From contig JBLDXI010000029.1 in assembly GCA_047495785.1 (NCBI GenBank), positions 1,612,001 to 1,676,000 of the forward strand: a DNA stretch of 64,000 nt, read 5' to 3'. The translations under genes and the position numbers were made by a program. Of this stretch, positions 6,576 to 61,178 are shown one piece after another (the first letter of the stretch is position 1; the number at the start of each line of letters is the position of its first letter). The notes under the pieces were generated by a model that worked only from the letters and a program-made list of their open reading frames with translations, was not told the DNA's origin and ran no database searches. Source of the stretch: Lepidodermella squamata. Lineage: Eukaryota; Animalia; Gastrotricha.

Positions 6576-9500
6576 CTATATGCATAGGCGATAAGCGCCC
6601 TTCTCAGAGAGATAGTTAACAACAATAGTGTAACCGTGAATTTCTGCAATTTTTAATGGTGAATTGCCTTCAGTATCGCAAAGGTTGACCTCGGCTCCAC
6701 TATCAACCAGCAATTGGACCTTATTGAGGAAACCATGCGATGCCGCCTGAATTAGCGGAGTGCGTTTCTTGTCCCTGTCAAAGGCTTGGCCGTTGACGTC
6801 AGCGCGATGATTAATCAGTAAGCGCGTCGTCTCCAAGTCGCCTCTAACAACAGCTATATCCAGTGGCCGGGAGCCATATCGTCCCTCCTGAGCATTTACA
6901 TCAGCGCCGTTATCGATCAAAAGTTTTATAATGTCCAGAGACGCTCGGTTGAGCACGGCGCGATGCAAAACTGTGCCGTTTACTAAGGGCCATTTCATGA
7001 ACAAACGCTGATCGCGCCAATTCAAGTCAACATGTTCGTTATCCAACAAACTCTTAACCCGGAACAAGTTGTTTTCCGCAGCAGCGTCACTCAATTCTTC
7101 ATTCTTTTTTTCCCGTTCGGCGGCTGATATGCGAGGTGTCAACAGGCCATCCAGCGCAGCTCTCCACACAGCTGGAGCCAGCGATAATGCTTCCTTGGCG
7201 CCTTGATGATCAACCCCACGATCCAGGAGCAGCTGAACAATTTCTGGATGGCCGCTCTCTACTGCAATAGCTAGCGGTGTCTTATTCGCCCTGTTGCGAG
7301 CATTGATGTTTCTTGAATGTTGAAGAAGTAACCTTGTGACTTCAACATTCCCGGCTTTGCATGCCAGGTGTATCGCCGTGTTACCAGTGTGATCAGCAAT
7401 ATCGACGTTAGCGCCTTCCTCCAGCAAAAGATGTACTAAGTTGGCTTCGCCATTCAAAACAGATTTTGTAAGGATGATGTTGAGATCAACCTGAAACAGA
7501 AATTAGCGCTATCAATATAAAATTAAAAATATATTTTAAAAAATATAAAAAAGCAGAAAACGATCATGACCTTAATGAAATTCGGTCTAAATATGTTTAT
7601 TCAAGTTTTAAAGTAATAATTGGCATAAAAAATTCCTTAGAAACTCGTGTACATTAAAATTTTATCAACCTGGGGCATTAGTTTCTTGATTATTGCCTCG
7701 TTTTTGTTTTGCTGTGCATGCAGGATCGCATTCTCAAAAGACTCCGCCCGCAAACCAGTGATGTCACCTTCCAACAACAGAGCGACAATGTCTGTCGAAT
7801 TGCGATCAACAGCACGCAGAAGAGTAGCTTCATCGACAGCTGTTTGAGCAGCCAGGAGCGTCAGAACTGCAAGGCTGCAATTGCTTGTTACAGCATAGAA
7901 CATTACAGAATGGCCATCTTTGTCTCGAGCTGAAACATCGGCTTTTCGATTGATAAGGAGCATCATATTTCGGACAGATCCGATTTTGGCTGCCATCAAT
8001 AAAGCAGTCTCCTCCCCTACGCTGGTCTTGAAGTCGACTTGGGCACAACGGTCCAAGAGCAGCTCGACAATATTGGAGCTATCCCGCTTCGTTGCAAGCT
8101 GCAAGGCAGAGAACGATGATTCCATATCGATTGCGCTGGGACTCGCTCCTCTCTCGAGGATAGATTCGATAAGCGGCATGGATGCGTTTGACTTGATTGC
8201 AACTATCAAAGCTTCTTCACCCGATATATTCTTCGCTTCTCGGCCATCATCGAATATCCAAATTGTTCCGCATACCTTGCCTTTTATCGCCCAAGTTGGT
8301 TGAACACAGTTCTAAAAGTACACAGTTGTTTTTATATTGCTTCCATATTTTTTACACTTACGCTTGTCGCCATTAGTCGCACTACTTTGGCATCAGGCGT
8401 AAGCCCGGTCACTTCAGTCACATTGAGATTCGCATCATAAAGAAGCCAGTGCTTTTCAACCGGATCCTCTGCTTGTTCATTTGCCTATTAATAACAATAG
8501 TTTTACCAAACGATATTTGTTAAGCAATTCAACAGATTGGCGTTCAGTTCGGCATGGAGTGTGGCGAGTTTAGATATCAACAATTTACGAGTGTTTTGAC
8601 ATAAAATATCGAATTGGCACTTGTATTATTGTGTTCCATTCTTTATTACATGAATAAGACCAAACCTGTTCACATCGACCAAGTTCAGGATACCAACTAG
8701 AATTTCCAATACAAATTGACACGATTGAACCGTGTGTCAAATTGAAACCGTTATCGCAATGAACGAGGACCATCGAGCCCAGCTTCAAATCATCATTCGT
8801 CCGCAATTTTCTACCTTTTTCATCATTGATAGTTCCATTCAAAATAACAGGGAGCTTGCAGTTATCTTCAGCAAAAATAAAGCTGGGGCAATTACTGTTA
8901 ACTTCATCATTTTTCGTACCTTTTACTTGTTCCTTTTCCACACATTTTCCAGGTTCTGACCACATATCCACGTCCACGCAGGTGATCGAATTTGCTCCGA
9001 CTAGAATGTGAGTAGGCGAGCAAGCAAACGTCACGCTCGTTCCGACTGATACCGGGTAATCGATCTCTGAAGACAGGTGAGCGTTTGATGGAATCTGAAT
9101 TGTTTCCGAGCAGCCTGTCATTATTCTGTGACAATCTGAATGATGTCAACTAAAGAAGGCAAACCTTTAGATAAGCATTCGCCTTTCTGATACCAAGTTC
9201 CATTATCAAGGCAAACAATCGCTGGAGCCCCGGCGATGCCATAGCCCGGAAGACAATCAAACACGGCAGTAGATCCTGCAGTCAGCTCGAAGCTATTTTG
9301 GCTGAATTCCTTAATTTCTGCATTCGCTGGTAAAGTTAACAACTCCTCGCAAACTGAAATCCGTGAACGAGACAAACCTAGAACATTGAACTGAACAGTC
9401 CATCCTTACCCCTAGCGCAGTAACCATTTACGAGCCACACGCCTTTCTTGGTATCGAAAAGCACTGCAGCAGTTCCAACGACAGCGTAGCCAACATCACA

Positions 9501-12138
9501 TGTTATTAACCCGATGCACGTGGCTTCTGAGAAAGTCACGTTTCCGTTTTCGACAAATTTCGGCAAGATTCTGTAAGCTATTGGCAAAAAGTGACATTGA
9601 AATGCAACGGTATGATGTATGCGCAATCTTCACGAATCGTATCAACATATCAACATAATAACTAAATAAGCTATGCTTAGCAAAAAGCAAGAAACGTAAT
9701 TTTTCTATAAGCACATGTAAAATGAAACTTGCGGTCGATCTGAGAAAAACAGTAGACTTACCTTGCGAGGACAGATTTCCATAACTCGAATTGAAGCAAG
9801 CTGTTGCTCCTTGTACGCTATTATCCATGCATCCATCAAACTTTCGAAGTAATTCGGTGACTTTGCTGAATCCGAGATTCTGCGCGAACACCAGCGGCGA
9901 ATCTCCATTTGAATTTGCACCGCACGATGCGTTGTACTTGCTTAGCAGCAAATCAACCAGGGGCGGACAATTGTGTAAAATAGCTATTTCAAGCAAATTC
10001 CTTCCGAGTGGATTTTTTAACTGCAGAGCAGTAATCAAGTCGGGTGTATCAAGACGACTAAGAAAGGAATCAGCAAACTTTATGCCACTTTCCATACAGT
10101 TGATCGAATCATGAAACATTGACCGGCCCTGCGAATCACTTGATAAAAATTGAGTTGGGCTGGAAGCCATCAGGATCTGAACTAGATCGGAGCTGCCTAA
10201 CTGAAAAGCCGACAATAGAGGGGTCTCGCCCTTTTTATTCTGCATCTTTGAAAGCCAATCAACGGCACCGAGGGATACAAGTTTTTTCAGCATATCAAAA
10301 TTCTTGCTTTGAACCGCTATATGAAGAGCTGTATCGTCTGTGACTGGGTTCGTCTTGTACATTAAATCGCCGTTAGCTTCGATCAAGAAATCGCAAATCG
10401 CAGTCCGGTTCATCGAGATGGCTAAGAGGAGCGGTGTATTGCCTGATGAGTCGATTTTGTCGAACGTCAAATATGTTACGAATTCGCTTAGGAATTCCAG
10501 GTAGTCAGCTATCACAGCGACGTGTGCTGCTGACTGGTTCAAACTGTTCACAGCCTCAGTATCAGCGTGATACGTCACAATCAACTTTCGAATGAAGTTC
10601 AAATCTTTCTTTTCGAGAATCGCAACAAGAAGAGGCGTCATTCCGCTTGTGCCGTTGTATTCAGATGACGGACGAGATCGCGCATTGATAGCAGAGCTTA
10701 AATCGGCAAATTTTCTCGCAACGAATTCAAGCATATCGACTGTCTTCGCCAGATGAAGAGCTGTATAACCTCGGTTGTCGATTGAATCGATAGAGGCATT
10801 TTCACCAGGCACAATTTCGGCTAATTGTGTAGCATTGTTCGCCACTGCATTCAGGAATGGAGTGCGACCGAATGAATCCTTTTCTTCCATTATATCCTTC
10901 TTTATTCTTAACATCTGATTCAGAATACCTGAGAGAAAGCATAGGACAAAGGCATAATAGAAGCTCGGGACTTAAGACAAAATGTAGTGCAATCATCTTG
11001 CTTTCTACCTAAATGCCTTAGTAATAATAATTTATTTTCACTACTTTGACAAACCTTTGATTAAAATGCTATTTCCATCGGCTTGTTCGTCTGAACGGAG
11101 TGCCATGGCATGAACAGCGTTTCCACCATTTGAATCTTTCGCCGAAATATCCACTTTCGCCCGAATCAAAGACGTGAGGATTTGCCCATCGCGAAGAAAA
11201 GCAGCCAAATGGATCAAAGAACCAATGCCTCTGGACACGGGATCTCCATTTTTAATTGTGTACGAGCATTTAATAGATCTGGACTGTGCCTTTTTAGGGA
11301 ATCGATGGAAGAAATTGGTTATAAATGTGTAGTGGCCCTTTCGAACAGCGTAACAAAGAGGCGTATCGCCGTTTTCATCTTCCGCTGCTTCGTTGAATTG
11401 GTCGGCTGTGAAATTGTGCCGGAATACCTTCAACTGGTTACTCGCAGCGATCAGATGGGATGTTGACAGTACCCGCTTTCGACCAATTCTTGACTCCGGC
11501 TCAAATTTGCTTAGCATTTTCTCAATCTCACTGCTACCACTCGTCAGGGCGAATTTCAATGCAAAGTCACCGTTGTGGTCGTTGTGGAATCGATCGGCCT
11601 TGTTTACCAGCAGTAACTTGGCGATCTCAGCTGATGTTGCGAGGTATTTTGATTTTGCAGCGTAGAATAGAGGTGTTTGACCTTCCCGCTGTGGTGCATC
11701 GATCATTGCCTTGGGCTCAAGCTTCAGATCCATCGCCTTCCGGGCTAGCAGCTTCACTACGCCAAGGTGACCCTTGAGACAAGCTAGATGAATCGGTAAC
11801 TCTCCATTTTCGTTGACACTTGTAACGCTGATGTTGACATCAGTTAAGAGAAATGTAGTTACCTTGACGGCGCCGTTCGATGCTGCCAAATGAAGAGCCG
11901 TGTTGCTATCAGCGAATTTGTACATTTTGAAAGCGGCGAAATCAACACTTTCGCGCTGGAGTTTAGTTTTCAGTTGATCAACCAAGTCGCCAGCAATCAA
12001 CGACTCAAACGACAATGAAATTTCAGCATTGTATTTGATTTCCGTCAGATCCTCATACTCACTATCGAACGGATAATCTAAGCTTCCAGACGAAGTTGCG
12101 GTTGACAAGAGAAGAGCGTATAGGAGCCATGCCAACAT
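6576..12138 (-). CDS. Ankyrin gene A: signal peptide + ankyrin repeats + ~4 CCP/sushi modules + ankyrin repeats (multi-exon)
   Basis: Start MLAWLLYALLLSTATSSG. ANK motifs (TALHLAA, TPLFYAA, TPLLLAI) in 11055-12138 and 9762-10928. CCP modules (AVFDCLPGY.IAGA.AIVCLDNGTW; VTFACSPTHILVGANSITC; VHCDNGFNL...CIGNSSW) at 8665-9575. A phase-0 linker exon 8484-8362 joins to ANK exons 8311-~7669 and ~7489-6576. One junction needs a 29-nt intron. Confidence 0.7.
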
Positions 12139-12577
12139 TTGGACGTTGACTCGTGAGCAGTATTCAAAGCCCACAAAATAGCCAGTTATTAAAAGTGGTT
12201 TCTACTACAGATGAAATATTACTATTTACAGTTACACTGTCAGAATAATTGTTATTCATCAGAATATTTCGACTGCGGAAAGTTCACGACATTATGGGCA
12301 TTTTAGAGGCGATTAATTGAGACGATGGAACTGAGGGAAATTTTCATATAAGCGTAACAGGTTGCATGTTGCATGTAATACTAATCGCGTGCCGAGCGGT
12401 TGAGAAGCAGAATGCTTTTAATGCATTTTGAATTCTTATTTAATTCGGAATCTCTGATAATACCGGAAACTGAAAGAAGTTGTTGAATGCCCAAGCGTGA
12501 ATCGAACTAAAATGATGCTTTATTAATGTAAAATTATTGTCAACAAAGCAATGGTGAATCGCTAGCATGCGAATCTG

Positions 12578-15500
12578 CTAAAGGCATACGCTATGAGCGC
12601 CCTTTTCCGTCAGATACTTAACAACATCAGTATAACGGAGACGTTCAGCAAATATTAGCGGTGAATCGCCATCAGTATCGCAAAGGTTGACCTCGGCTCC
12701 ACTATCAACCAGCAATTGGACCTTATTGAGGAAACCATGCGATGCCGCCTGAATTAGCGGAGTGCGTTTCTTGTCCCTGTCAAAGGCTTGGCCGTTGACG
12801 TAAGCGCGACGATTAATCAGGAAGCGCGTCGTATCCAAGTCAGCTCTAACAACAGATACATCCAAAGGCCGGGAGCCATATCTTCCCTCCTGAGCATTCA
12901 CATCAGCTCCGTGATCGATCAACAGTTTTATAATGTCCAGAGACGCTCGGTTGAGCACGGCGCGATGCAAAACTGTGCCGTTTACTACGGGCCATTTATC
13001 GAACGAACGCCGATCGCGCCAATCCAAGTCAATATGTCCGCTATCCAGCAAACTTGAAACACGAGCCAAGTCGTTTTTCGCAGCAGCGTCACTCAGCTCT
13101 ATGTGCATGTTTTCCAACTCGGCGGGTGATATGGGAGGTGTCAGCAGGCCATTCAGCACGCTTCTCGACGCAGCTGGAGCCAACGGTAATGCTTCCTTGG
13201 CGCCTTGGCGATCAGCACCACGATCCAGGAGCAGCTGAACAATTTCTGGATGGCCGCTCTCTACTGCAATAGCTAGCGGTGTCTTATTCGCCCTGTTCCG
13301 AGCATTGATGTTTCTTGCATGTTGAAGGAGTAGTCTTGTGACTTCAACATTCCCGTGTTTGCATGCCAGGTGTATCGCGGTGTTGCCGCTGCCATCATCA
13401 GCAGTATCAACCTTAGCGCCACTTGCGAGCAGAAGCTGCACGAGTTCGATTTTATGAGTCGTTATAGCTTTTCTCAGCATCGAATTGAGTTCAACCTGAA
13501 ACAATTGTTTAACACAGTCTTCTTGTGATTGCATAATATTAATGTATAGGGTATAGGGAAGAATTTTTATTTGGCAAATACCATAAGCTGGTCTTATTTC
13601 GGACGGGGTAAATTCGGACACATTTGACTTTAAACTTAAATTTCTCCTCAACTCTCGCGAATATAGAGATCGTTCAAAGCACAGAAGATAGTCCTGAGTC
13701 TTGTCTATGAAATGAAACCTCAAAAACGCAGAAGTATGCGAAGAATGGTCTAACTTCTTCGCAGTCATGTCCCACGACCCAAAATAACTAACTTTTCACC
13801 AAGTAGGTATTTGTTGCTGGAGAGAAGCGGAAAATATAGAGCACCATCGATTTAGTGATGCTGTTATGTTCAAACCAATTTCACACAAATGCTTTGATCA
13901 GGAAATGCTTTAGAAAACAAGTTTTGCCCCGGCTAAATTCGGACAGCTTCAAACTACGGAAAATTAAAAAAAGATGCCAATTGGCCTCGACATTTTTTTA
14001 AATCCATATCTTAGTGAGAACAGCACTAAGCTGCGTTGGGAGCACAATTCACTATCATGCATTTTGTTTATATTTAGGTTTTTTCTTTGAATCTGGCTCA
14101 CAAATTTTGTCTCTTTAATGTGAACTTTGACCCCAATCTAAATATTCATACTAAGCTGTCCGAAATTACCCCAGTTGTGTCCGAAATCAGCCGAGTCAGT
14201 TACCTGTGAATACCAGTGCAGTTAAGGCGTATTTTTACCGCGATTACCTCTAGAATATGCAGTTTTTCAAGGCGCATATGTTGGCGTAAATCACGTAAAA
14301 AAAAGTTGTTCACCTCGAAAAAAGAAGCCCGAAAAATCAGTTTTGCCCGAAATAACACCAGCTTACGGTAAGTGAAAATCAGTTGCGTAATTTTGCGAAT
14401 TTTGGTTCAAGTCGGGTAAATTTTACTATTTAATTTGTTGGCATCGTGGCTTTCTAGATTTATGACGCTTCGGGCCAACTAAGTAATACCGAATAGATTA
14501 TCTCCATTATCTAGGCCTAGTTGAATCCAATTAGGCTCGTGGCAGGTTCGTGCTAACCTGCTTAACCTCCTACCAAATCATGGATCATATCAAGTCTTTA
14601 TTACGAGCTCCAATTCCTAGAAAATTATTTTACGCCTACTAGCTGTTATCTGCTATTAAATTTGAAAAAAGAATAACGATATTTTCAGCGCTAATCAATA
14701 ACCAACGAAAAGATATGTAGAAGTAGAAGGTAACATTATTGTATACATTTTGCAGTAATGCAATGAAATTCGCCGATATCAGTTTTAACTCTAATTATGC
14801 TAGATTTCGAGTCATATCGCATAAATGTTCAATTCTACTGACCTTTGGCAAGAGTTGATCCATTATAGCCTTGTTGTTGTAGTTGTTGTTTTGCTCTGCT
14901 AGCTGGAACGCTTCCTCAAATGAGTCAGCCTTCAAGCCAGTCATGTCACTTTTCAACAGCAGAGAAGCGATGTCCGTCGAATTGCGACCAATAACGCGCA
15001 GAAGAGTAGCTTCGTCGACTTTTGCTTTAGCGGCTAGCAACACCCGAACAGCGGGGCTGTAATTGCTTTCAACAGCGTAGTACAACACCGAATGGCCATC
15101 TTTATCCCGAGCTGAAACATCTGCGCTTCGATCGATCAGTAGCATCATATTCCCGACGAGACCGGCTCTGGCTGCCGACATCAAAGCAGTTTCCTTGCTC
15201 TGGCTGTTTTTGAAATCGACCTCGGCGCAACGGCTCAGGAGCAGCTTGACAACATCTGAGTTCTTCCGCTCGGCCGCAAGTTGCAAGGCGCTGGACGACG
15301 ATTTCTTATCGATTGCGTTCGGACTCGCGCCATTGTCAAGAATCGATCTAACTAGTGGCAGAGGCGCGTTCAACTCGATTGCCTCTATTAAAGTCCTATC
15401 CAAGCTGTCGATTTCAACTTCATCGCTGTCAAGACGTTGACGAATTTCTGATAGCTTCCCTTCTCTTGAATAACTTGGTTCGCCATAGTTCTAGAAAATA

Positions 15501-30929: not shown

Positions 30930-32435
30930 ATGCATCCTAGAATAGGCTTGACCAAGTCTTGCCCGATTGCCGTGCCGAAATCCAAGACCAGTGAAATTTT
31001 CGTGCGCGTCCCAGATGGCGATGAGCTAAATGTACACAGCGCTCCGAAGAGCAGTGATGGCTTGTTAACAGTCAACGCTTTGCCTATGTGTCTCAAGGCC
31101 AAATCCTCCGATAATCATGGCGAATCGGCCTATTCAAGAAGTTACAGCGAATGTAGGGGCTCGTCGTTTCTCAATGCGGAGGCAAATCGATTTTTGGACA
31201 TTGCGAAGCAGCTGAATGGAGGGATTATGATTTCGATTAGTTCCCTCAACAATTCTATCGATGATAGCCCACCTGGAAATGAGTCGAATGGAGTGCGCTG
31301 CGACCAAGTTGACCTAATACTCGACGAAACCGAGACAGACGCTGTTTTGTCAATTTTCCGCGATGCGAAAATGAAACTTGAGGATTTAGCTAATGATAGC
31401 TTGAAAAAGTTTATTTTCTGATAAATCAACCGTTGCTAACGCTTTTTTCTCGCATAGGATGAAGTCTGACACAGTAGGCAATGGAGATGGTGAGTGGGAA
31501 CTACTAAGCCAGGACATTTCCTTCCTCGACGAAGTTTCGGGCTGTCATAAACATCCTACTCTTCGCGTCATTAGTCGTAGACGTGCTGTTCCTGGTTCGC
31601 TCGATCAAGCTTCCGGTCCGATGATCTACAAAATAGGCCATTTATCTGGCAACAAAGAAGATCTATCTTGCAAGAATTGCTATGATAAACGGAGCGAGAG
31701 CCTGCCGAATGAAAATATTGAAATACCGGAACTCAGATCATCGAGAAGATCATCCGGCAGGCCTCAGTTAGTCTCCCAGCAGTTCAGTTTCACCGAGCGA
31801 CGATCCTTAGCTCCGGAGAATTCGCTGGATGTGCTTCCACGTCAACTCAATCTACCAATGGCATTCTCAGAGAAGGAAATCTCCATCCTATGGGAAACCT
31901 TCAACTACGTAAAGCACGATGCCAGTGAAATTGGGCCGAAGGCTATTAAGAGAATCGCTGCCCTAGTTCCGGACACATTCAAGATAACTTCAGAAAATGG
32001 AGTGATTCAAGTAGGCGACGATCAATGGGGGAAAATCATGCAGCAAGGTTGGCTTGAAATCATTTCGTAACCTCCTCCTTAAATTTTTGAACATTGTCAG
32101 GTTTCACGTTTTTAAATGGAATTGAGCGATTTCTATTGCGACTCAAGCGCCCACCCGTTTTGCAGCGCTATATCAAGCAGCTGGCTGAGAGTCATGAAAA
32201 GAAATACGGCGTAGGTGTGGATAAGCTGACAAGTGCTCTGAACGTTTTCGGCACGTTGCTGATGGAGTATTTGCAAAAGAAACACTACCACGGCAGCAGT
32301 GCCGATTTTGATTTGACGATGATGAAACGCTTCACCGCTGATCACAGCCAGTGTGAAATTTGCTCGTCGTGGATAAAATTCATTGGATTTATCAGCCTTC
32401 AATTATCAGCTTGCACTAACGTGACTGAAAATTAG
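30930..32435 (+). CDS. Globin G10: long N-extension containing a vestigial half-globin, then a full globin (E7 Gln, F8 His; HYH...CEIC)
   Basis: Exons ~30930-31408, 31458-32047, 32101-32435. Full domain: FSEKEISILWETFNYVKHDASEIGPKAIKR...IMQQG|FTFLNGIERFL...YIKQLAESHEKKYGV...CEICSSWIKFI. Confidence 0.8.
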
Positions 32436-32851
32436 ATGAAGTAACCCTGAGTTTCGATGGCTTCAGTCCGTTTCAAAGTAAAGCTATGTTGTGCAGATAG
32501 GACAGTGTTGGCTATCAAGAAGTTGGAATCTTTGACAGGAATTCACTTGCGTGCAGATAGGAAAAGGTGTATTGCTAATTACTTTCTATAGAAAAATATG
32601 CGGAAAAACCGCACAGGGCTCGGCCAGCATGTGTACGGTTTTCTTCCTCTATGCGTAAATCATAATAAATCAAGAAACACGTGAAGTTTTCCATGTATTA
32701 GCTTTCTCCAGTGGCTCTTTGGCGATGTGTGATAGCAAGGCACTGTATACCTATCAATCCCTAGCATATCTTTCACTGAGGAGCAGATTCGAGTTCCTAC
32801 CCTCAAGTGGTACAATATTACAAAACATTCGTTAAACCACATCTTTATCGA

Positions 32852-33008
32852 AGCGCCAAAACAACAACTATAAAGTTCGCTATGGAAAGTACGATCGACC
32901 CTTGAACGGAAGCCAAACTTACGATCAGTATGCTCGAACGTACTACATCATTACGCTGGGCTCATTCAAGTACGATCGAATGAGTCATTGAAATGGTTGT
33001 TTTGGCGC
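32852..33008. repeat. Small fold-back element
   Basis: GCGCCAAAACAAC ... GTTGTTTTGGCGC termini with internal repeated AGTACGATCG. Confidence 0.5.
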
Positions 33009-33647
33009 GTCTCTAGCGAGATATTGCTGCGCCGTGTTTTGATAGAAAATCTTACTGCCAGCCAGTTAGAACGGATAAGGTCTTTCGAAGATTCGCAGGC
33101 TTTTGTACTGATTACTTTCCTCTCATGATAAAATTCTCATACCAGGGTATTTATCGCAATTCGAGAAAGCGTGATTTCCCGCTGAATAAATTGTTTCTTT
33201 TTTTCTGCCGCAATTTTTTACATAATTCTATATAAGTATGCAACTATGCGAGCTTTTAATTTTACGCTGACGAAAGCAGGATGGTTATTTATCAATGCTA
33301 ATTTGATTCATATTTTGCATCGCTTATATAAAAGTAAACCCAGCTTATATATGTTCTACGAAACGGACCCATTTCCTTCGCTTCAATTCCGGATCCTATC
33401 GATGCGTTAAACGATCGCTTTCTGATATCTCTGGAACTCGAATTACAAGCCTGAAGAAGGAAACGCTAGAGCTCACTGATGTCGGGTAAACTTTCAGCGC
33501 ACTTTTTTAAACTATGCGAAATTCAAGAGCGCCCACTTACTCCAAGCAAATTATTGAGATCTCATTTCAAATTTAGAATTTAGAATTCGAATTTTCCGTA
33601 GATCTTATAATAATATATTATAATATTCACGTCTGCAAACGGTGGCA

Positions 33648-34785
33648 ATGTCAAAATTGGTAAGTAGGATTATTTCCCCGGCTTTAATTTGATATTGAGA
33701 AGTAATAATATTATCCTCTCCGGGGTGTGTTAAATTGATTTCCGTCTCATCCCACTTGCATCAGCGATGAATAATAATTGTCCTTAAACACTGCAAAACA
33801 GACCCCAGGGAGCAGCGAGGCGGAACCGCCGTCACGTTATTATCAGCAGAATCGGCAACGTCGGTCGTCTCATTCACATTTCTCAATTGGAATGAACATC
33901 GTCCGCAGGTTTAGCTCTTCCCTTCTGCCAGATCGCGCTGGCAATCACCGCGACTCGAGCGATAGTTTTACGATAAATGAAACAATCGCCGAGAAGCCGC
34001 TATCTCACAGCCTGGTTTCTACCACCCTGAGTTACGAAGGCCTCCTCCAGCAGAAGAATCTGGCCGTTCTACGGCGGAAAAGCAGTGGCGCGATGCCGAA
34101 CACCCCAACGTCTGATTTCAGCCTAGCGGGTAGTTCGGAATGCTGCACGGATGAGGATGATAACGACATGTTTCTCGACCTAATTCTGTCCAATGACGAA
34201 GTTCACCTGATTAAGGAAACGTTTCGCGAGGTTAAAGATCGGCGCGATGAAGTTGCACTATGTGGCGTTCAATGGTAAGTTTCAGGTCACATGCGTTTTG
34301 CTCTCAAATAGGAAATGTTTTTGTATGTCAATAGTGTTGCCGCCAGGATGCCACAGACGTTTCGTAAACTGCATATCAACCCGTCAACAGTGAGTCATCA
34401 TGAACTCATGCCATGCGACACCTGGGAGTTGCAGCAGTGCGGCGTCAACTACCTCAGCCTAATCGAGCGATGCATTCTCCGCCTTAACCGACCGCATCGA
34501 TTGAAAACGTACCTACTTGAGGCGAGTGTTGAGGAAGAGATGAATAACTCGGTCACATCCAGTGAATTCGCCCTGATAATCGCGTCGTTTGAAGAGGCGC
34601 TGATCACATTTTTCCGGGGTAGGAACCATAATATGGAGAAGTGCATCGAGGAAACGACCTTCTCCATGGAGACAGTTTCATCCTCATCAGGTTCGGATTC
34701 TACAACTGACAGTGAGATGATCGTTGCCGTCTGGACTAAATTCTTCCGTCTAATCTATTTCGCTCTATCGCTTAAAAGTAATTAA
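33648..34785 (+). CDS. Globin-fold protein G11 lacking the proximal His (F8 Glu; E7 Cys), with long Ser-rich N-extension
   Basis: Micro-exon MSKL (33648-33659) splices in frame to 33802. LSNDEVHLIKETFREVKDRRDEVALCGVQ | VAARMPQTF...WELQQCGVNYLSLIERCILRLNRPHRLKTYLLEASVEEE...VAVWTKFFRLI. Confidence 0.75.
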
Positions 34786-35150
34786 ACTTTTGAGTTGAAG
34801 TTAAAGAGGACATTTCCTTATATCGTGGTTAATCATCTTTGAGTAGCCGTTCTCTCCCGCGCTTCTCGATATTTATATATCTCTTTTGGCAGAGTTCTTG
34901 AAATAAAACTTGATACGCCTGAAGATGTTTTTTCACTTAGCTTCAAAAGCAAGACAAATGCTATTGATCGGCGCCATTTATAACCACGCAGCATTAGGCT
35001 CCCAGGTAGTGGCGCTTCCGATGTCGCGTTGAAAACATCGGAGACATAAGCACTCATCAACTTCCTCGACATTTATTTCATCAAAGACACTGGCTAGACA
35101 GCTAATTTTTCAAGTAATAGTTGTGCTTGTTTTTTATTACTTTCGGCAAA

Positions 35151-36120
35151 ATGGGGAAAGCGATTTCAACGATGAGCATTTCGGACCGAGACGGCTTTTT
35201 CGTTGCACGACATCACGATCACGGCATTGTAGCCGTTCAACACCACCTTAAAGCGAATCAAAGCGATTATGATATCGAGCGAAGGAGGAGGTCTATTCAG
35301 GTCGTGACGGCTTATGCGGAGAACAGTAGGAACCAGCGGAGATACACAGCTACAAGCGGCGATAAGCCTAGTGGCAGACCTGGGTCGAGACTTTTCTTAT
35401 CCACAAGTATTACGCCAAGCCCTGAAGAGATTGGAATACTTCAGAAAAGTATGGAACGGTGCAAAAAGCAAAGAGAAAGAATCGCGAATCGAGCAATTGC
35501 TGGGTGAGATTCTGTTCCAACTTTTAAAGAAGTAATTGCTATTTTTTCCAAAATTTTCCAGCTTCATACGGAATATGCCAGATGCGCCTGAGATGTTGGC
35601 TAGAGCAGCTAAAGCTGGAAATCGCAGGCTGGACCCTGCTGAGCTTACCCGTCGTGGGTTGATGATGTTTTCCGGGATAGAAAGATGTGTCTACGCCCTC
35701 GATAATTTGGACAAATTGCAGTCAATGGTCGCAGATTTCGCGGATCTCCACGCCCGCCATCAAGTCCCGGTTGAAGCAATCTCAATAGTCGCTGATCTAC
35801 TTGAGACGGAAATTCTCTTCGCCGTCAGAGGAATGCATGGTAAGAGCTGCCGGTTGATCTATCGCAAGACGACGCTTGACTCACTGGCTACTGCGGCGAT
35901 TTCGAACATCAGCATCGGACTGAAAGCTGCGTCTGTTAACAATTTGATCGACGAAAAGGCGACCGAGCATTTGACGGCGCGGCACCTGACGCCGCACAAT
36001 GACTGCATGGTTTGCAATGCTTGGCGTAAATTGTTCGACATTATTAACATTGTCATGATATCGCAGATGCTTTCCACGACTAAACTTGTAGCAGCTAAGA
36101 CGCTTTCTGCTGCTACCTAG
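35151..36120 (+). CDS. Globin G12 (MGKAIS; E7 Arg, F8 His; H..C...H..CMVC)
   Basis: PSPEEIGILQKSMERCKKQRERIANRAIAG | FIRNMPDAPEML...ELTRRGLMMFSGIERCV...VADFADLHARHQV...GMHGKSC...PHNDCMVCNAWRKLF. Confidence 0.85.
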
Positions 36121-36424
36121 GCAGCATGGAAGACTTCAGTTATAGTATCGAGTAAAAGAATGCGTAATCGTAAAGACTGACTTTTTTACATTTATTGACG
36201 CATGATATGGCGCTTAGCCTTCTAATAATTTAGACATCTCGCTTTTCAGGTTTTGAGCCTCTAATCATTCTACGTCAAGCCGAGGAGTCAGCTAATTACG
36301 CAAGACATTGGCTGAACTCAATTCTTCGCGAATATTTCGTCCAAGGGACATTTCGGCGTAAACAGTCTTTTCGCTCGAAAAACTCATTTCAAACGTTAGA
36401 CAACGACTGCCGCACTATATCAAC

Positions 36425-45192: not shown

Positions 45193-46579
45193 TTAGGTCG
45201 CGGTTATACGCTTTATCCAATCTAAGACCGAGCAAACGCGTACGAAACTGATGATTTGATACTCGAAGATTTTTGTAAATTCACGCGACCAGACACCTTC
45301 TAAAGTGAAAGCGTTGTCTTTATAGCAGGTAAGCGGACTTCCGCCGATCTCAGCAGAACCAGGTATCCAGTTGAAACCAGTCACCCGGGCGCAAACCATG
45401 TTCGGATGAATTTTGCCGGGCAGTGACGCGTTGTAGTGCTCCTGGCATTCGTCAGGCTGTATAAGATTCACGGCAGCTTTTCGCGTCTTAATCGACCCGG
45501 TCATGAAGCCTGTATTAGTGAACCCGGTGTTGGTTATGATGGATTGATCGCTTGTCATGCATGGGTCTTCGCACGATGCTGGCAGGCATATCGGCTGAAT
45601 ATTCCATGAATCGAAAGTTATAGGACGTGGGACAGTCGCATTCCCTATAATCGAAAAATCATTAATCTCCTTTAAGATTAAAAATTATAAATCTCTTGGC
45701 AATGAGTCAATTTAATGATGAAATCGATTTTCTCGAGGATATCGAAAAATAAGGCGCTTACTTGATATTTTAACTAGACAGAAGTCGTAGCCCATCCTAG
45801 TTGCATGCGACAGTGGATGGATTACAATTTCGGAAGAAGTCGACATGAAGGAGACTTTGACACCAAATTTGTCGTTCATAAAACCACTCGTCCATCCTCC
45901 AACGATAGTCAGCGCCTTCGGAGCCAATGCGACGCAACAATTCGCAGAAGTCAAGACCCAATCAGCATTCACAAGTGCCCCACCACATGCTGTTGATTGG
46001 TTGAAAAAATGCCGTCCGGATAGCCAGACCTGCGCCATGAGAGTAACCTATGTAATTTGCCTTAAGGCAGCTGTTTGTGATCGAGCATGCACGTTATTCC
46101 TTACCTGCCACGGGAATTCGTGATTTTCTGTCGCAACGTAGCCTGCATCTGTCAGAACACCGAAATTTCCTATTACATCAGTGCTGTTGCTTCGGATATC
46201 ATTTCGACTCCATAAAATACTACGGCCACATTTTCCTTGTACACTAGGAGGGACTGGTATCCTATCTGTGATGAAATATAATGTTAAGGATTAAAAATAT
46301 TTTTAGAATTTAACCATGAAATGCAATCGCAGAGTTGCCTGGAGGTGGAAGGGTGATGTTGTCGATCGCTTCAGCTTGTTCCCTCGACTTGCTTGTAGCT
46401 CTCCTTGTAGAACTAGGAGCTAAATAGTCGCCGTAAGTTATCGAAGGGTTGAGAGTATGGAGTAAACTTGGCATCGAAGGCTCGGGCGTAACCCGAACAT
46501 TGGCAAAGCACGCCGATGTCAACGATTTGCGGCTGACGATGTGGAAAAGCGATATAAGAACGAAAGCAAAGTTGGCCAT
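45193..46579 (-). CDS. Secreted trypsin-family (S1) serine protease homologue, predicted catalytically inactive
   Basis: Signal peptide MANFAFVLISLFHIVS; HEFPWQ; CGGALVNADWVLTSANCC (His->Asn); YDFCLVKI; NIQPICLP; MVCA; PGSAEIGGSPLTC (GDSGGP lost); FVRVCSVLDWI. Confidence 0.85.
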
Positions 46580-48408: not shown

Positions 48409-49360
48409 ATGGGTCAAAGTGCGTTGACAGGTGACCGTAGACGCTTGAATGATGGTCAAGAAGGCCCGAAGAGTGATGAACCTAAACGGCGGTTAACCGA
48501 CGCCACCGCAGAACTAACTATTCGAAAAACACGAACATTTGACAGGATTTCTACTCTGAACGATCAATCAGCCAAAGATGCACATCTGTGCACGTTCACG
48601 ATCCAGCCGCCATGTACAGTTCTTCACTCAGCTGGTCATTCAGACGCATCGCTAGCTGACGATGGCTATGATGAAGACGAGGAAAGCCTAGCCCCAGAGT
48701 CTGAATGGCTCATAAGCGCCGAAGATAGATCAGTCATTCAGAAGACGTTCGACAACGTGAAAATAGCGAGAGAATACATCGGCTGGAAAGGAATGCAAGG
48801 GTAGAAATTTGTTTGTTCTTATACTCTCTGATCATTTAATTTCTAGGATTTTCGAAACATTTCCCGACGTAGCGCACAGTTTTCGAACATCTCCCCATAC
48901 GCCGATCAAGAAAGGGTAAAAGTGAATTATTTTTAAAATAATTAATAATTCGTCCTTCTTTTTCTCCACAGTGACAACTGGGAGCTAATGGTAAATTGTC
49001 TGACCTATTTTCGGGATTTTTCATTGTCTTTATCTACAGGGTCAGGGTATGACGTTCCTCTCAGGCATCGAGCGTTTCCTGAAACGTATAGGAAGACCAC
49101 GTGGGTTCAGAAGTTATGCCGCCGCGTTGGCGCAATCCCATCGGAAGTACTCTGTGTCTCCACACTACATGTTGACAGCGCTGGAAATATTCCAAAGCGT
49201 CATAGTCACGCATCTTACCAGCCGCGAATCGCAAATTGAGGGCGAAAAAATTCGTGCGTCATGGACACATTTTTTCGATGTGCTACGTAATGAACTCGCC
49301 TCGGCCTCAAACGCAGTAGCGACTAACGAGCAGCTTTGTCCTTACTACTCGAGTGAATGA
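48409..49360 (+). CDS. Globin G14 (MGQS; E7 Gln, F8 His; includes a 20-nt micro-exon)
   Basis: ISAEDRSVIQKTFDNVKIAREYIGWKGMQG | IFETFPDVAHSF...IKK | GDNWELM (48971-48990) | GQGMTFLSGIERFL...YAAALAQSHRKYSV...RASWTHFFDVL. Confidence 0.85.
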
Positions 49361-52750: not shown

Positions 52751-55027
52751 ATGACAGGAATCGCTCCGAGCGGACAGGAAGTAGCTCGAGGCTCGTGGGG
52801 ATCAGCAATCCAATTCTTTATCACTTCAATAGGTTTGATGAGCTTCAAGAACTGTTTCAGAGCAAACAATCGTCCACCTTAATGTAGGAGCGGCTGTTGG
52901 GCTAGGAAATGTCTGGCGTTTCCCGAACGTCGTCTTCAGTAACGGAGGAGCTGTATTCCTAATCGCTTATGTTTTAGCGCTAGTTTTTCTTGCAATTCCT
53001 CTCCTGCTACTTGAATCAGCTATTGGTCAGTACTCGAAGAAAAGCCCGATCGGAGTATGGGACATGAGCCCGATATTTCGAGGCGTCGGATTGGCAACAT
53101 TCTACAACGCACTGCTTCATGTTTGCTACTACAACACCCCTCTTACATGGTAAGCTTTCATTACAAATCGGACTGAAATGCAAATTTTCTCTCAGGGGTG
53201 CCTTTTACTTTGTGAATTCATTCACGGATAAACTTCCATGGAGCGCCTGTGATCCGGATTGGTCGCGGCCCTCTTGTGCAGTCAGTAAGTTCAACATAGT
53301 TGGGAAATAACGCCTTGTACCATTTTATCCCCAAGATAAAACCGGCGTTATCAACGCTACGAGTCCAGCAGAGGACTTCTTTTAGTTAGTTAGATTTTTC
53401 CAGTGATTCGTACATAAAATCTCCACGTTTCTTTAGCAATAACACTTTGAAGCTGTCTGGAGATGCTGAAAATTGGGGCGAATTTTCGTGGCAGGTCTAT
53501 CTCGCTAGCGTAGTCTTGTGGTTGATTCTATTCGCTGGAGTCTCGTTTGGTGCTTCGACCCTGGGCTATGTTTCATACTTCACTAGTCTCTTCCCCTATG
53601 TCATGCTTACTGTAATGATCGGCTACACAGCAACTTTGGAAGGTGCATCCCGCGGGGTTGAATACTACATCACAAAGGTAGAGTGGGACAAGTTGAGTGA
53701 TATCAAATTATGGCGAGCAGCTATCGGTCAAGTTTTTTACTCAACAAACTGCGCTTTGGGTTGCGTGATTCAACTGGCGAGTTACAACAAATTCAATCAT
53801 AATATCTACCGCGATGCAATTCTTATTCCGATTCTTGATGGTCTGACCTCAGTCTTTGCCGGATTCAGTGTTTTCACTGTTCTCGGCTTTATGTCTGTTC
53901 AAAGAAATGTTACTATCGAAGAAACTGTAGAAGCAGGTTTGTTACAAACCATTTCAAGGTGGAAAATCTGAGGTTTTAATTGAACTAAGGTCCTGGTTTG
54001 ATTTTCATAACGTACGCTGAGCTTTTCACTTACATTGACGGCGGCTACGTTTGGTCGGTCTTCTTTTTCTTCATGATTATGGTTTTGGGCATCTCGTCTC
54101 AGCTTCCGGTCATCGAAATGTTCTGCTGTGGCATTTCAGATCTGTTTCCATATTTCAACAAAACCCGTGTCCATAATTTAGCGCTGCGATTTGGTTTCGT
54201 CTTCTTCTGCATGTCCTTAGCGACGTTTTTCTATTCAGGGGTAAGACCATTCGAAAATAAAGTTCCTTTGTCTTACTCCAGTTTGATAGAATGGCTACTA
54301 CTGGTACTACCTCATTGATGAAAGAGTGGCGGGTATCCCTCTCATAGTTATTGGATTCTTCGAGCTCATCGGAGTCGCATGGGTCTACAGTGGACCAAGT
54401 ATATTCATAGAAGTTATCATTACTCATATAATTATATAAAATATCAAAGGAGCTCAAGTTCTTCTGGCTAACATCAAGGAAATGGTTGGCACAGAATGGG
54501 GCCCGACAGCTAATAAGGCATTCGGCATAACAAAATGGTATTGGCTAGTTTGCTGGCTATTCATTGCTCCGGCAACAATGGCGGTAAGTCGATGTCCTCA
54601 CGATGATAATCCTTTTGATTCCAATTCACTTTAGTTCATCCTGATTTACGACCTCATTCAAACTAGTGATAAACCTCTTGTTGCCCTTGGATACCTATAC
54701 CCAGACTGGTCTATCGCAGTTTCTTGGGTTTTGGTGGCAATTGCGCCGGCATTAATTCTATTCGCCGCTTTCTTCGTAGCCTGTCGCTTCTATGGAGCCT
54801 GCAACCCTTGGATAGCCGGTTCGGAGCCACTGGACTCGTGGGTGCCAGCGAAAGAAAAGTCAGAAGAGCCAGAGATTCCTTCAAATGTACATGAGCTACA
54901 AACTATGCAGAGCAGTGTGATCCCCAGCTACCCGCCGCCTAACTGGGCTGCCATACCACCGGCCCAAAACTACGGCGTTTACACAGTGCCGCCGCTCAAG
55001 TTGGCGCCAGGAGAGGAGAAAGTTTGA
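52751..55027 (+). CDS. SLC6 (Na+/Cl- neurotransmitter/amino-acid symporter) family transporter 1, multi-exon
   Basis: RGSW...IG|AAVGLGNVWRFP...NGGAVFLIAY...LLLESAIGQYS; YFTSLFPYVML; WRAAIGQVFYS; LASYNKFNHNIYRDA; TSVFAGFSVFTVLGFM; GPGLIFITY. Confidence 0.92.
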
Positions 55028-55239
55028 AAAACAGTCTTGTGGTGATTAATCGATGAGAAACTTGATAATATAATAAAGCTGTAGACCCACCTATGCGCCG
55101 AATCGCTATTAGCCCCACTTATTGGCTAATTTACTGCCGATAAGATAAGGCCGTTCACTTTTTCGGGTGACGTGAGTGCGGGCGCCAATAGCCAAAGCCA
55201 AGAGAAAATTACTTTTCGTATACCCTACTTTCTCGCCAG

Positions 55240-57325
55240 ATGAAAAAACACAGAACCAGACCTGTCCCTGAGTTTTCGTCGATTGACAGAGGGACTTGGT
55301 CGGGTATTCAGTATTTATTCACATCTCTCGGCTCAGCAGTTGGTCTAGGTAATGTCTGGCGGTTCCCAAATATCGTTTACAAGAACGGTGGAGCAGCATT
55401 CCTTGTTGCATACGTTATTGCCCTAATATTTTTCGCAATACCAATCTTACTACTGGAGTCTACGATCGGGCAATACTCTAAGAAGGGCCCAATCGGTGTT
55501 TGGGACCTAGCCCCAGCCCTTCGAGGAACAGGTTTTGCGACTCTATGGACCTGTTTCTGCTTCGTTGTCTACTACAATACGCCATTGGCTTGGGCAGGAT
55601 ACTACTTTTCAAGCTCATTCACATCAGAGTTGCCGTGGAAGCCTATAGGTGATCGAAAAAACTCCAACACGGCTAGAAATTCAAGTAAAATGTGTCTTAC
55701 AGATGAAACGCATGATCACAGTGTCGAGATTTTCCCGGCTGAGAGCTACTTTTAGTAAGTCAAAGAATAAAGATTAATTCCTCTAAAATCAGTGTTCTAG
55801 CAATGAAACCCTAAAACTTTCATCGGCAATTGATGAATGGGGCGAATTCTCTTGGCATGTCTACCTTTGCAACGGAATCATTTGGCTTGTCATTTTCGGA
55901 GGCGTTAGCCTTGGGGCTCAGTCTATGGGTCGCATTTCCTTCTTCACAACAATTTTTCCATACGTAAGACTCAGATCCTTCGATGTAAGACCTAATCCTT
56001 AGGCTTTTAGGTGATGATCACAATAATGATCGGCTACACTTCAACGCTTCCTGGAGCTGGCAAAGGCGTCGAATTTTACATAGCGAAGTTTGAGTGGGAA
56101 AAGCTTGCGAAAATCAGTGTTTGGCGCGATGCCATTGCCCAAGTTTTCTTCTCAACAAACTGCGGTCTCGGAACAGTCATTCAGCTAGCTTCATACAACA
56201 AGTTTAACCACAACATCTATCGAGACGTGGTCATAATCGCTGTTATAGACGCCTTGACATCAATTTTCGCTGGTTTCTCGGTGTTTACTGTCTTGGGTTA
56301 CATGGCTGAGAAGCATAACCATACAGTTGAAGATGTTTTGGACTCAGGGCCAGGGTTGATTTTCATTACGTACCCAGAGGCCTTCCTTTACATGGAAAAT
56401 GGCTTTGTTTGGTCTATTTTCTTCTTTCTGATGATAATGGTACTAGGAGTCAGCTCGCAACTCCCATGCATCGACATTTGTTGCAGCGCCATTGCAGATC
56501 TCATTCCATTTTTCAGCCGAAGCCGTTTGCATAATATTCTGTTCAGATTCGGATTCATCCTACTTTGCTTCGCCTGCACAACCTTCTTCTACTTTGGTTT
56601 CGGGTACTATTGGTACTTTTTGGTCGACGACCGTATTTCTGGAATTCCATTGATGCTGATCGCCTTTTTCGAGCTGGTTGGGGTCGGTTGGTTCTATAGT
56701 CGGCCGTGCTGTGCCTGCGCTAATGTATTGCTGAGCAATATCGAAGAAATGGTCGGCCCTACTTGGTCGAGGCGATCTTGGTCCATCTGGAAGTACGCCA
56801 AGTATTACTGGGTCATTTGTTGGACTTTGATCGCTCCTGTCATGATTGCGGTGAGTCTGTATTTTAGATCGGAAAATCTATAATTCACATTTTTCAGTTT
56901 ATCCTAATCTACGATTTGGCGGACAATAGTCCAGTCATGATTGGAACGTATCTAGTTCCAAGCTGGGCCGCTGACATGAGTTGGGCCATTGTAGCGATCA
57001 CTCCTTTGCTCATTTTCGCAGGATTAATTTTGGTCCCTTGCCTTCAGTATCGCGGTTATACGGTAAAACGCCCATACATTGCGCTGATGTTATTGAATTT
57101 TTTCATTTCAAGGCGTGGATGAATGCTCTCCATCCAATGGAAGCGTGGAAGTCTGCCCGTGATTCAGATGGCCTCGACCCAAGGTCACGAGAATCTTGGT
57201 ACGGGGCGGCTTACATCGACTACCCAGACTACCCATCCCGAAGCCCTTCCTTGCCAAGAGCTGCAGTAATAACGGAACCAAGAAGTCGACCCAGTATCAT
57301 CGACAATCTAACACTCGATATCTAA
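55240..57325 (+). CDS. SLC6 family transporter 2 (tandem paralogue)
   Basis: RGTW...LGSAVGLGNVWRFP...NGGAAFLVAY; WRDAIAQVFFS; LASYNKFNHNIYRD; SGPGLIFITYPEAF. Confidence 0.92.
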
Positions 57326-59089: not shown

Positions 59090-60030
59090 TAAATTCGTCC
59101 GATATTGCTTTGAAACAATACCAAGTCCCAGGCATTTTTAACTAGATGATTTTGATGGCTCGATCTTGTGACGATTGCAGCTTGTCGCGAGTCGATTTTG
59201 AGGCTCGCCCAAGGGTAATGTCGCCATAATTCAGATGACTGACAACGAGACCGTTGGTCATCATGACAGCAGTTTTGCGATCAATTCCAGCATCGACAGC
59301 TTGTTAGAGAGCGAACAAGCCCTTTCGAGCCTTGCCCTTCGCCATCTCGATGTGTTCGTCTAATAAGAGCTTATTGTCAATATGGAAGCCGAGTGTGCTC
59401 ATTGATTCAGACGGCTTAATCGCAACGCCGCCGATGGTGACCGTGAAGTCAGGCGCTGTCGAATGGTGCGGCTTGAGCAGCATAAACTGCGATTTTTTGA
59501 CATTTACCGCCAGGCTGTTCTGCTTCAGCCATGCGCACCAGTTCCAGTTGTAGAACAGCCTGTAGTTCGTTGATGTTTTTCGAACCAAAGAAAATGGTAA
59601 CGTCGTCAGCGTATTGAGCAATGCCGCATCGGTTCAAAATCAAAGGCAGGTCGTTTACATAAATTGTGAACAGGAGCGGGCCAAGGACCGATCCTTGTGG
59701 CACACCGCAATCAATCGACTCGAACGGGGATGCTTCACCGTTGATTTTCGTGGTTTGGCGGCGATTGCTCAAGTAGTTTATCAAAAGGTGAACTGACCTT
59801 TCCGTTACCCCAGCGGATCGGAGCGACTCGATGATCCCATCGTGGTGAAGCGTGTCGAATGCTTTTGACAAGTCGATCGACACTGCTCCAACCACGTTTC
59901 CTGTGTCAAGTAGACGTCGCCAGCGTTCGGTAAACGATGCCACGCATGTGTCTGTCGAATGGTGTTGACGAAATCCGTGTTGCGCCGGTGTTAAGAACTT
60001 GATCGCTCGCAAGTGATCTTTCAGCTGTGT
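59090..60030 (-). mobile_element. Truncated, frameshifted non-LTR retrotransposon (LINE; CR1/L2-like) reverse transcriptase
   Basis: QHGFRQHHST, SIDLSKAFDTL, YLSNRRQ, GVPQGSVLGPLLFTIYVND, QYADD; continues in another frame as WLKQNSLAVNVKKSQFM...LGFHIDNKL. Confidence 0.9.
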
Positions 60031-61178
60031 TGCCAGGCAACGCTCGAACGTACGAGCTAGCGGCGAAGTGAAGTTTGGTTACGCAGCCAAAGTGGATTTG
60101 CGATTTCAAAATAAGATATAAAGTGAAGTCGCCCTTCGAAAGTTCCCCGCAAGTTGGCGAGACTCGATCTGAGAAGATAAGGCAGTTGGCACGGTAAAGT
60201 GTCACGTTAACTCCATTCCCATGAAGAATAGAATGATTTAACCATTATTTTTATGCATTCAACTCTTTACCGCCTCACGGTTTTACTCTCCTTTCGGACG
60301 CCATAAAAATAAGATATAAATAAATGGGTGATTATGACGTCAATTTGTCAGTGCTCAAGGCTAGCTTCTTCGCATAACTTCTGTACGTGCTACGTGCGCG
60401 AAAAAGCATTTTTCTCAATAACTTGTTTAACCAGTTGTCATTCATAACGCTGTAGTTTCCGTCAAAACTTGCCGGCGGCTTAAGGTTTGAGTGTATACTT
60501 TGAAAGCAGGTGAGTATTCGAGTCGATTTCGACAAGAGTTTGCTGCATCAGTTCAGTATGAGCTTTTCGTGATAAAACGTTTTTTAAATATTCAACTTCT
60601 ATGGCAAACTTCGCAGTGTTCATCGGTGTTATGGTGAGGCTGGGCAACATTTTTTAACTATTTCATCTTTTAATTTTCCAACAGGCCGCTTTCGGACTAT
60701 TTTTTTTGACTGAAGGCCACGAGGTTGCCGAGCAGCAAGAGACAGCTAGAGAAGAGCCATGCATTACGCCGTGGGGAACGCCTGGCACACTGAGAAGAAT
60801 ACCTGGTGCAGGTTGCGTTGAGAATGGACACGTTGTAACATCCCCTCCCAAAGCTCCCGCCAGCTGTAAAACTCGTGAAGGCAAGCCGGGTTATAAGAGA
60901 GGCAGCATGTGCGTCCGATTATGAATCGCCTATGTAATTGCATGAACTGGAGAGATGAAGAGATGGAGGCGAGCAGCACATTCAATAGATGATATGCTGA
61001 GCTAAACGTGAATGCATTTAAGAATAAATCAATAGGAGAATCATGCACTTACAATTGCTTTCATTAAAAATAAAACAAAAATAAAAATAAGGTGTTCTAA
61101 AAAAATTGTCAAGAGGCACATTTACTCCAGTTCACTGCAGACATACGCAAAATATCCGCAAATGTCGATTGCAAATTT

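Follow-up and report, generated by a model that had tools for sequence, protein, structure and literature searches.

G11, one gene of a tandem globin array in a 64,000-nucleotide stretch of the Lepidodermella squamata genome (hereafter, the window), carries glutamate in place of the proximal histidine at F8 and cysteine at the distal position E7. The gene is real, expressed and maintained by selection, and it belongs to a cluster of highly divergent globins specific to its lineage. We consider it somewhat better than an even bet that G11 is a heme-free or otherwise non-canonical globin. Of all residues in a heme globin, the proximal histidine is the one regarded as indispensable, and a gene copy that lacks it is commonly written off as a pseudogene or as annotation noise; G11 is an expressed copy of this kind, with the same two replacements and a remodelled pocket in a second lineage, evolving at an ordinary rate.

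The window contains 14 divergent globin genes in tandem on the + strand, from 17.9 to 49.4 kb, all with intact models whose exon–intron structure was drawn from open segments and GT..AG junctions. G11 is flanked upstream by G10 (31459-32435, + strand), which has histidine at F8, and downstream by G12 (35151-36120, + strand), which has a Met-Gly start, histidine at F8 and a CxxC motif. The paralogues of the window are only 24–27% identical, and Pfam Globin gave weak matches for the G10- and G12-type proteins and none for the G11 exons or for the G11 counterpart described below. The globin homology of G11 was thus established by transitivity: G11 exon 2 matched the 13 paralogues in a profile comparison (hhalign, 98.6%, E = 1e-15), the family profile matched solved globins, and the paralogues have weak Pfam matches of their own. 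By sequence homology, G11 therefore belongs to the globin superfamily (PF00042, the 3-on-3 animal globins), and it joins the family of the window by hhalign, by its position in the cluster, by its B12.2 intron and by the H-helix W-x-K-F-F motif. A structural model restricted to exon 2 predicts the C, E, F, G and H helices in the globin arrangement. What sets G11 apart from its cluster family is the lack of a Met-Gly start, of the F8 histidine and of CxxC, together with a short GH loop.

The G11 gene consists of two exons. Exon 1 (33892-34274, + strand) lies in a frame open from 33778, with its first in-frame ATG at 33892, and encodes a Ser/Arg-rich N-terminal extension of ~96 residues followed by globin helices A and B up to codon B12; in a MAFFT alignment, these helices line up with those of the paralogues. 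The extension contains RRKS and starts with MNIVRR in the gene model, without the N-terminal Met-Gly acylation signal; an MG start is found in 9 of the 14 window globins and in the G12 counterpart. The intron (34275-34334, + strand; 60 nt, GT..AG, phase 2) falls in a codon six residues ahead of the C2 proline, which we take to be the classic globin intron position B12.2 in myoglobin numbering. Exon 2 (34335-34785, + strand) encodes helices C to H with the short GH loop and ends in a TAA stop at 34783-85. Left unspliced, the frame is interrupted by a TAA at 34276-78; once spliced, it is a 277-codon open frame with a product of 277 residues.

To these models we compared the contigs of three public runs, X1, X2 and X3, over positions 31400-36200 (4,801 letters). 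X2, a run flagged only 'RNA?', covers the exons of G10, G11 and G12, shows no depth at all in the intergenic bins 32366-32848, 33171-33653 and 34942-35102, and has contigs over the G11 exon 1 region that start at ~33804. One X2 contig skips the 60 nt of the intron, joining 34273>34334 (cut +1). That X2 is RNA is a guess, supported by its exon-only coverage and by this spliced joint. X3, from a different study, contributes 340 nt of exon 2, over 34377-34716. Assembled contigs speak to presence rather than level of expression, and on this evidence G11 is transcribed and correctly spliced; the initial annotation had described its frame and splice sites as intact, and the open frame, the GT..AG junction and the joined form in X2 bear this out. 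The same comparison settles whether a base error hides a histidine, which had been raised as a way for the observation to fail. An X1 contig (34354-35347) matches the window throughout, an X2 contig (34402-34843) has five differences that all lie at 34683-34695, and at the F8 and E7 codons the contigs of all three runs agree with the window. The Glu F8 codon is not a base error.

The five differences at 34683-34695 form an unusual pattern of their own. Five consecutive codons differ at their third positions (TCC TCA TCA GGT TCG to TCG TCT TCG GGC TCT); all five changes are synonymous, common to X2 and X3, and absent from the window and X1. Such a cluster would be odd as a set of independent point mutations and may reflect a change of several bases at once in the GH loop, which is Ser-rich. 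Between G10 and G11, positions 32849-33170 hold a high-copy repeat, with a summed contig depth of ~4,700 against ~100 around it in X1, a DNA run, and many loose ends; the repeat is found in X2 and X3 as well.

The assignment of the two altered heme-pocket residues rests on the reading frame, on alignment and on solved structures. In the exon 2 frame, TAC at 34510 opens the stretch Y-L-L-E-A-S-V-E-E, the ninth codon of which is GAA, encoding the F8 glutamate (34534-34536, + strand), and the E7 cysteine is encoded by TGC (34438-34440, + strand) within LQQCG. These are the residues given by the initial annotation, which read helix F as YLLEASVEE without the F8 histidine and E7 as the cysteine of QQCG. 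At F8, histidine is present in 13 of the 14 window globins and glutamate in G11 only, with agreement between a MAFFT alignment of the 14 spliced models and a separate alignment of the last exons; with the neighbours of the G11 counterpart included, histidine occupies this position in 15 of 15 other globins. Among the 13 paralogues without G11, the F8 histidine is the only invariant column, and it is opposite this histidine that the glutamate sits in the hhalign match. The family profile in turn matches solved globins, including Oligobrachia giant hemoglobin B2 (E = 4.7e-7) and myoglobins (~1e-4). In these matches, the invariant histidine of the family corresponds to the proximal histidine and a Q/H column to the distal histidine, which anchors the F8 and E7 labels to solved structures. 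The E7 column of the window family is otherwise varied, with glutamine in six members, histidine in two, arginine in two, and also valine and leucine; cysteine occurs in G11 alone and, among 17 aligned globins, only in G11 and its counterpart.

Loss of the CxxC motif had also been listed among the peculiarities of G11. The loss itself is real, as the family CxxC site ahead of the H-helix tryptophan (34714-34725, + strand) reads E-M-I-V in G11, but it is not special to this gene because five other paralogues, G5-G8 and G14, also lack the motif. At the HxH/HxC clasp position G11 reads N-H-N, and it thus has neither of the two motifs that flank the GH loop.

A second G11-type gene was found in metagenomic sequence. 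An exhaustive HMMER search of 1.84 billion protein representatives with G11 exon 2 yielded a single true relative, P0001 (119 aa, E = 7.8e-19, 38% identity), encoded on the ENA metagenome contigs L001 and L002, which are 99.8–99.9% identical to each other. A second hit, P0002 (1244 aa), is a TPR-repeat protein in which 'CLLxLNKPHEALQYY' was matched nine times, and was discarded as spurious. On L001, a G10-type, a G11-type and a G12-type gene follow one another in the same order and orientation as in the window. The G10-type gene keeps the F8 histidine ('LVNGHRRKY'), and the G12-type gene, 155 bp downstream of the G11-type gene, has an MG start, the F8 histidine ('IAAVHCSY') and CxxC. The G11-type gene between them has two exons separated by a 53-nt phase-2 intron (1763-1815) in the same codon as in G11, so that the B12.2 position is occupied in both. 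Its product starts with MEQRHN and reads T-Q-C-G at E7 and Y-L-L-D-V-K-S-A-E at F8, and hence keeps both the cysteine and the glutamate. It also keeps CxxC (C-K-T-C) and H-D-N-C. As this protein has Glu at F8 yet retains CxxC, loss of the histidine is not linked to loss of CxxC, and it was earlier than, and independent of, the loss of the clasp in G11.

Between L001 and the window we detected no nucleotide similarity and no further synteny, and L001 could come from another species or represent an old segmental duplicate instead of an orthologue. With either origin, two long-separated lineages keep the same state, and the argument from conservation is unchanged. Indeed, that a distant syntenic counterpart has Glu F8 and Cys E7 strengthens the view of G11 as an intact functional globin without the F8 histidine. 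Further searches covered other collections: a word-index protein search with exon 2 returned nothing, an ESM Atlas feature search gave no usable match, exact-product look-ups with two versions of the window open reading frame found no record, and JGI metagenome scans found no further G11-type genes with an alignment of G11 and its counterpart and nothing with the degenerate pattern L-R-L-[NK]-R-P-H-R-L-x-x-Y-L-L.

The conserved trio and its surroundings have several features of separate interest. The G10–G11–G12 order (31459-36120 in the window; 1-3287 on L001) is kept despite synonymous saturation and the absence of nucleotide similarity, and the gap between G11 and G12 is 366 bp in the window and 155 bp between the L001 counterparts; kept order and very short gaps may reflect co-regulation or an operon-like unit. 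Downstream of the trio, L001 carries Cys-rich Kunitz-like and Gly/His-rich secreted-looking genes (3485-6223, - strand) with no counterpart in the window. Intron positions vary widely across the 14 paralogues. G10 has a 53-nt intron in helix E (32048-32100, between IMQQG and FTFLNG) that its counterpart (L001 19-771) lacks, which implies intron gain or loss within the family, and G14 includes a 19-nt micro-exon (48972-48990) that encodes 'DNWELM'. In both lineages, the G10- and G11-type proteins carry in their N-terminal extensions an R-R-x-S motif that resembles a target site of basophilic kinases (G11 'LRRKSSG', 34075-34095; G10 'RSSRRSSG', 31740-31760; L001 'FRRKSG', ~1540), and G11 and its counterpart have in common an acidic D-x-F-x-D-x-x-L-[SN]-x-D-E segment just ahead of helix A.

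We next consider whether G11 could be a transcribed pseudogene or a neutrally drifting copy. Such a reading would explain why a residue deemed essential is missing, why Pfam Globin does not match and why the end branch of G11 is 1.5 times the median in a tree of the 14 genes; we nevertheless regard it as very improbable. The 277-codon frame is open and correctly spliced, and in the counterpart, too, the frame is open and the intron kept, even though synonymous sites are saturated. In a 17-domain globin tree, G11 pairs with its counterpart (support 100/100), on a shared stem of 1.08 with tips of 0.70 and 0.88. The G10 pair (100/99) has tips of 0.43 and 0.78, and G12, G13 and the G12 counterpart group at 99/97, with tips of 0.58 and 1.34 for the G12 pair. 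The long branch is therefore the shared stem and not the tips, and the extra change in G11 predates the split of the two lineages.

Comparison of each gene with its L001 counterpart yields a consistent picture. Pair identities are 41% for G10, 32% for G11 and 30% for G12, and pN is 0.40, 0.50 (0.47 in the domain) and 0.49, respectively. Because pS is saturated in all three pairs (0.79–0.86) and the paralogues are as divergent as stated above, dN/dS of G11 against its counterpart or its paralogues is not computable; pN and tip lengths like those of G12 indicate that G11 has been about as constrained as this His-bearing neighbour since the lineages split. Differences between runs point the same way: among the listed coding differences, all within the N-terminal extension or the GH loop, 10 of 11 are synonymous and one is non-synonymous, against an expected synonymous share of 23% (binomial P = 3e-6, or P = 8e-4 with the run of five counted as one event). 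A further eight differences from the window in an X2 contig over 34180-34273 lie outside this count, as do 42 rows of differences. Frame, splicing, expression and substitution pattern thus all lack the marks of a pseudogene, and since base error, non-transcription and neutrality all fail as explanations, G11 is not one. The initial annotation had named lack of transcription and neutral evolution as grounds for rejecting its reading, and neither applies: X2 covers the exons and holds the intron-less form, and a syntenic relative keeps the same state.

Changes in the G11-type proteins extend beyond the two iron-flanking residues. G11 keeps nearly all of the 40 family columns that are conserved or uniformly hydrophobic, including the A-helix E..L...F, the C2 proline, the E8 glycine, the IERC motif, FG5, G12 and the H-helix W-x-K-F-F; it departs from the family at F8, F4, E14, G8 and CxxC. 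At five heme-contact positions, both G11-type proteins have changed in the same direction relative to the 15 other globins, a comparison of n = 2 G11-type sequences placed by myoglobin-based numbering rather than by measured geometry. E14 is Leu in G11 and Thr in its counterpart, against Gly, Ala or Ser in the others; G8 is Ile/Leu against mostly Ala or Gly; G5 is Phe/Tyr and aliphatic in 15 of 15 others; F4 is Ala/Val against Leu, Ile or Phe; and FG3 is Asn/Arg, against Tyr, Phe or His in 14 of 15 others. The lining of the heme cavity has thus gained bulk at three positions (E14, G8 and G5) and lost an aromatic heme contact, which suggests that the G11-type pocket is partly filled or re-shaped. 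E11, E15, FG5 and G12 are still hydrophobic, which is compatible with a filled core as well as with a retained heme pocket.

The most conserved stretch of the G11 type, CILRLNRPHRLKTYLL (34471-34518, + strand), spans the end of helix E, the EF corner and the start of helix F, and 13 of its 16 residues are the same in G11 and its counterpart; its histidine and leucine are unique to the pair. In all, Cys E7, the 'RPH' histidine of the EF corner, Leu F2 and Glu F8 are identical in the two proteins and absent from the 15 others, as are an asparagine at the second clasp-His position, a threonine (column 130, in the trimmed GH-loop region) and Phe-Ala at the end of the H helix. At 36% identity, the chance that two given positions are both conserved is ~13%. 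Neither of the residues that we considered as an alternative proximal ligand fits, as the 'RPH' histidine, the sole histidine in the vicinity of helix F, lies 13 residues before F8 and Met F10 faces away from the pocket.

G11 might instead still hold heme through ligands other than histidine, either the Glu F8 carboxylate, with ferric iron and Cys E7 on the distal side, or a Cys E7 thiolate, in which case it would serve as a redox or gas sensor or as a heme carrier rather than bind oxygen. We view this as a possible but doubtful alternative. Tyrosine, cysteine or glutamate can ligate ferric heme in a globin, as hemoglobin M variants and engineered myoglobins demonstrate, and H93C myoglobin is an example of a Cys-ligated globin heme. 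Both G11-type proteins, though only ~36% identical, have Glu F8 and Cys E7, and no other globin of the comparison does, which suggests that each of the two side chains is important for its own sake; the pocket is still mostly hydrophobic, and from known globin geometry a glutamate at F8 would be long enough to reach the heme iron. However, the bulkier residues at E14, G8 and G5 and the lost aromatic at FG3 take up space and contacts that heme uses in the 15 His-bearing relatives. Judged by the same geometry, Cys E7 would stop several angstroms short of the iron unless the E helix underwent a large shift, which makes thiolate ligation the weaker form of this alternative. A text search of partial literature found nothing relevant on natural globins with Cys E7 or Glu F8, or on gastrotrich globins.

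The initial annotation had left a choice between a heme-less pseudo-globin and Cys-thiolate ligation. Its core, an intact functional globin without the F8 histidine, stands; the thiolate becomes less likely on geometric grounds, and a carboxylate ligand at F8 was not among the options it gave. At the level of sequence, the five coordinated pocket changes favour loss or displacement of heme.

A different use of the same two residues would place Cys E7 opposite Glu F8 in a collapsed pocket, where they would form a heme-independent metal or redox-thiol site. This would account for the exchange of both iron-flanking residues for ligand-capable side chains, for the conservation of both, and for a pocket remodelled in both lineages. 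We hold it to be unlikely, as conservation in the pocket extends to just two candidate ligands, the G11-specific 'RPH' histidine is probably too far away to add a third, and no precedent was found. Likewise an outside chance, though a slightly better one, is that a centre of either kind, a heme-independent Cys E7/Glu F8 metal or redox site or a Glu/Cys-ligated heme, has been selected in two lineages, always between the same two ordinary globins.

We therefore return to the heme-free or non-canonical globin, which is favoured by the coordinated pocket changes and by the loss of Pfam signal in both G11-type proteins. In the sequence of events that we propose, His F8 would have been replaced by glutamate and the distal residue by cysteine before the split from the L001/L002 lineage, and a burst of change on the shared stem would have reshaped the pocket, with bulky residues taking the place of small ones at E14 and G8, an aromatic that of an aliphatic residue at G5, a small that of a large one at F4 and a polar that of an aromatic one at FG3. 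Since then, the G11 type has evolved no faster than its His-bearing neighbours. G11 would have kept the globin fold, most likely without a stable His-ligated heme cofactor, and the fold may now serve to bind a small ligand or a partner, conceivably one of the adjacent globins, or act as a thiol-based sensor. From these patterns we infer a probable loss of heme and a new role for G11.

Elsewhere in the window, a large ankyrin-repeat gene cluster (6576-15403, - strand) contains two near-duplicate pairs (6576-7457 with 12578-13768; 7637-8209 with 14795-15403). Trypsin-like serine protease exons lie between G13 and G14 (45193-46038, - strand). Two tandem genes (53447-57325, + strand) resemble sodium:neurotransmitter (SLC6-type) transporters by their translated motifs, and open frames at 59304-60205 (- strand) have reverse-transcriptase-like motifs (YADD) that suggest a non-LTR retrotransposon fragment.

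G11 offers a clean natural case in which to study the use of a globin fold once canonical heme binding has been given up, and it indicates that large lineage-specific globin expansions can include maintained non-heme or non-canonical members. Hemoglobin M variants and H93C myoglobin, in which the globin pocket holds ferric heme through tyrosine, cysteine or a carboxylate, are models for a heme-binding G11; those, however, are pathological or engineered single changes in otherwise normal pockets, whereas the G11 state is natural, conserved and accompanied by several pocket changes. Among bacteria, non-heme globin folds include the N-terminal domain of RsbR, the pXO2-61 sporulation-inhibitor sensor domain, photoglobins and phycobiliproteins (PMC8717448), and bacterial non-heme globins are also discussed by Stranzl 2011, to the extent that it is cited in PMC7457136. 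G11 does not descend from a bacterial sensor-globin lineage of the RsbR or pXO2-61 type; it nests among the animal-type paralogues of its own cluster, and its sequence matches run only through that family. Closer parallels come from crustaceans, in which monodomain HbL globins of Daphnia pulex have Tyr or Val at F8 and HbL2 of the ostracod Puriana has Met at CD1, Val at E7 and Val at F8 (PMC7457136). These His-less globins were noted from alignments, and a function other than oxygen supply was suspected (PMC7457136). Like them, G11 is an animal globin paralogue in an expanded family in which the proximal histidine has been replaced. Unlike them, G11 belongs to a different clade and has glutamate rather than Tyr or Val at F8, and its replacement is conserved together with Cys E7 in a syntenic counterpart, with other positions of the pocket altered too.
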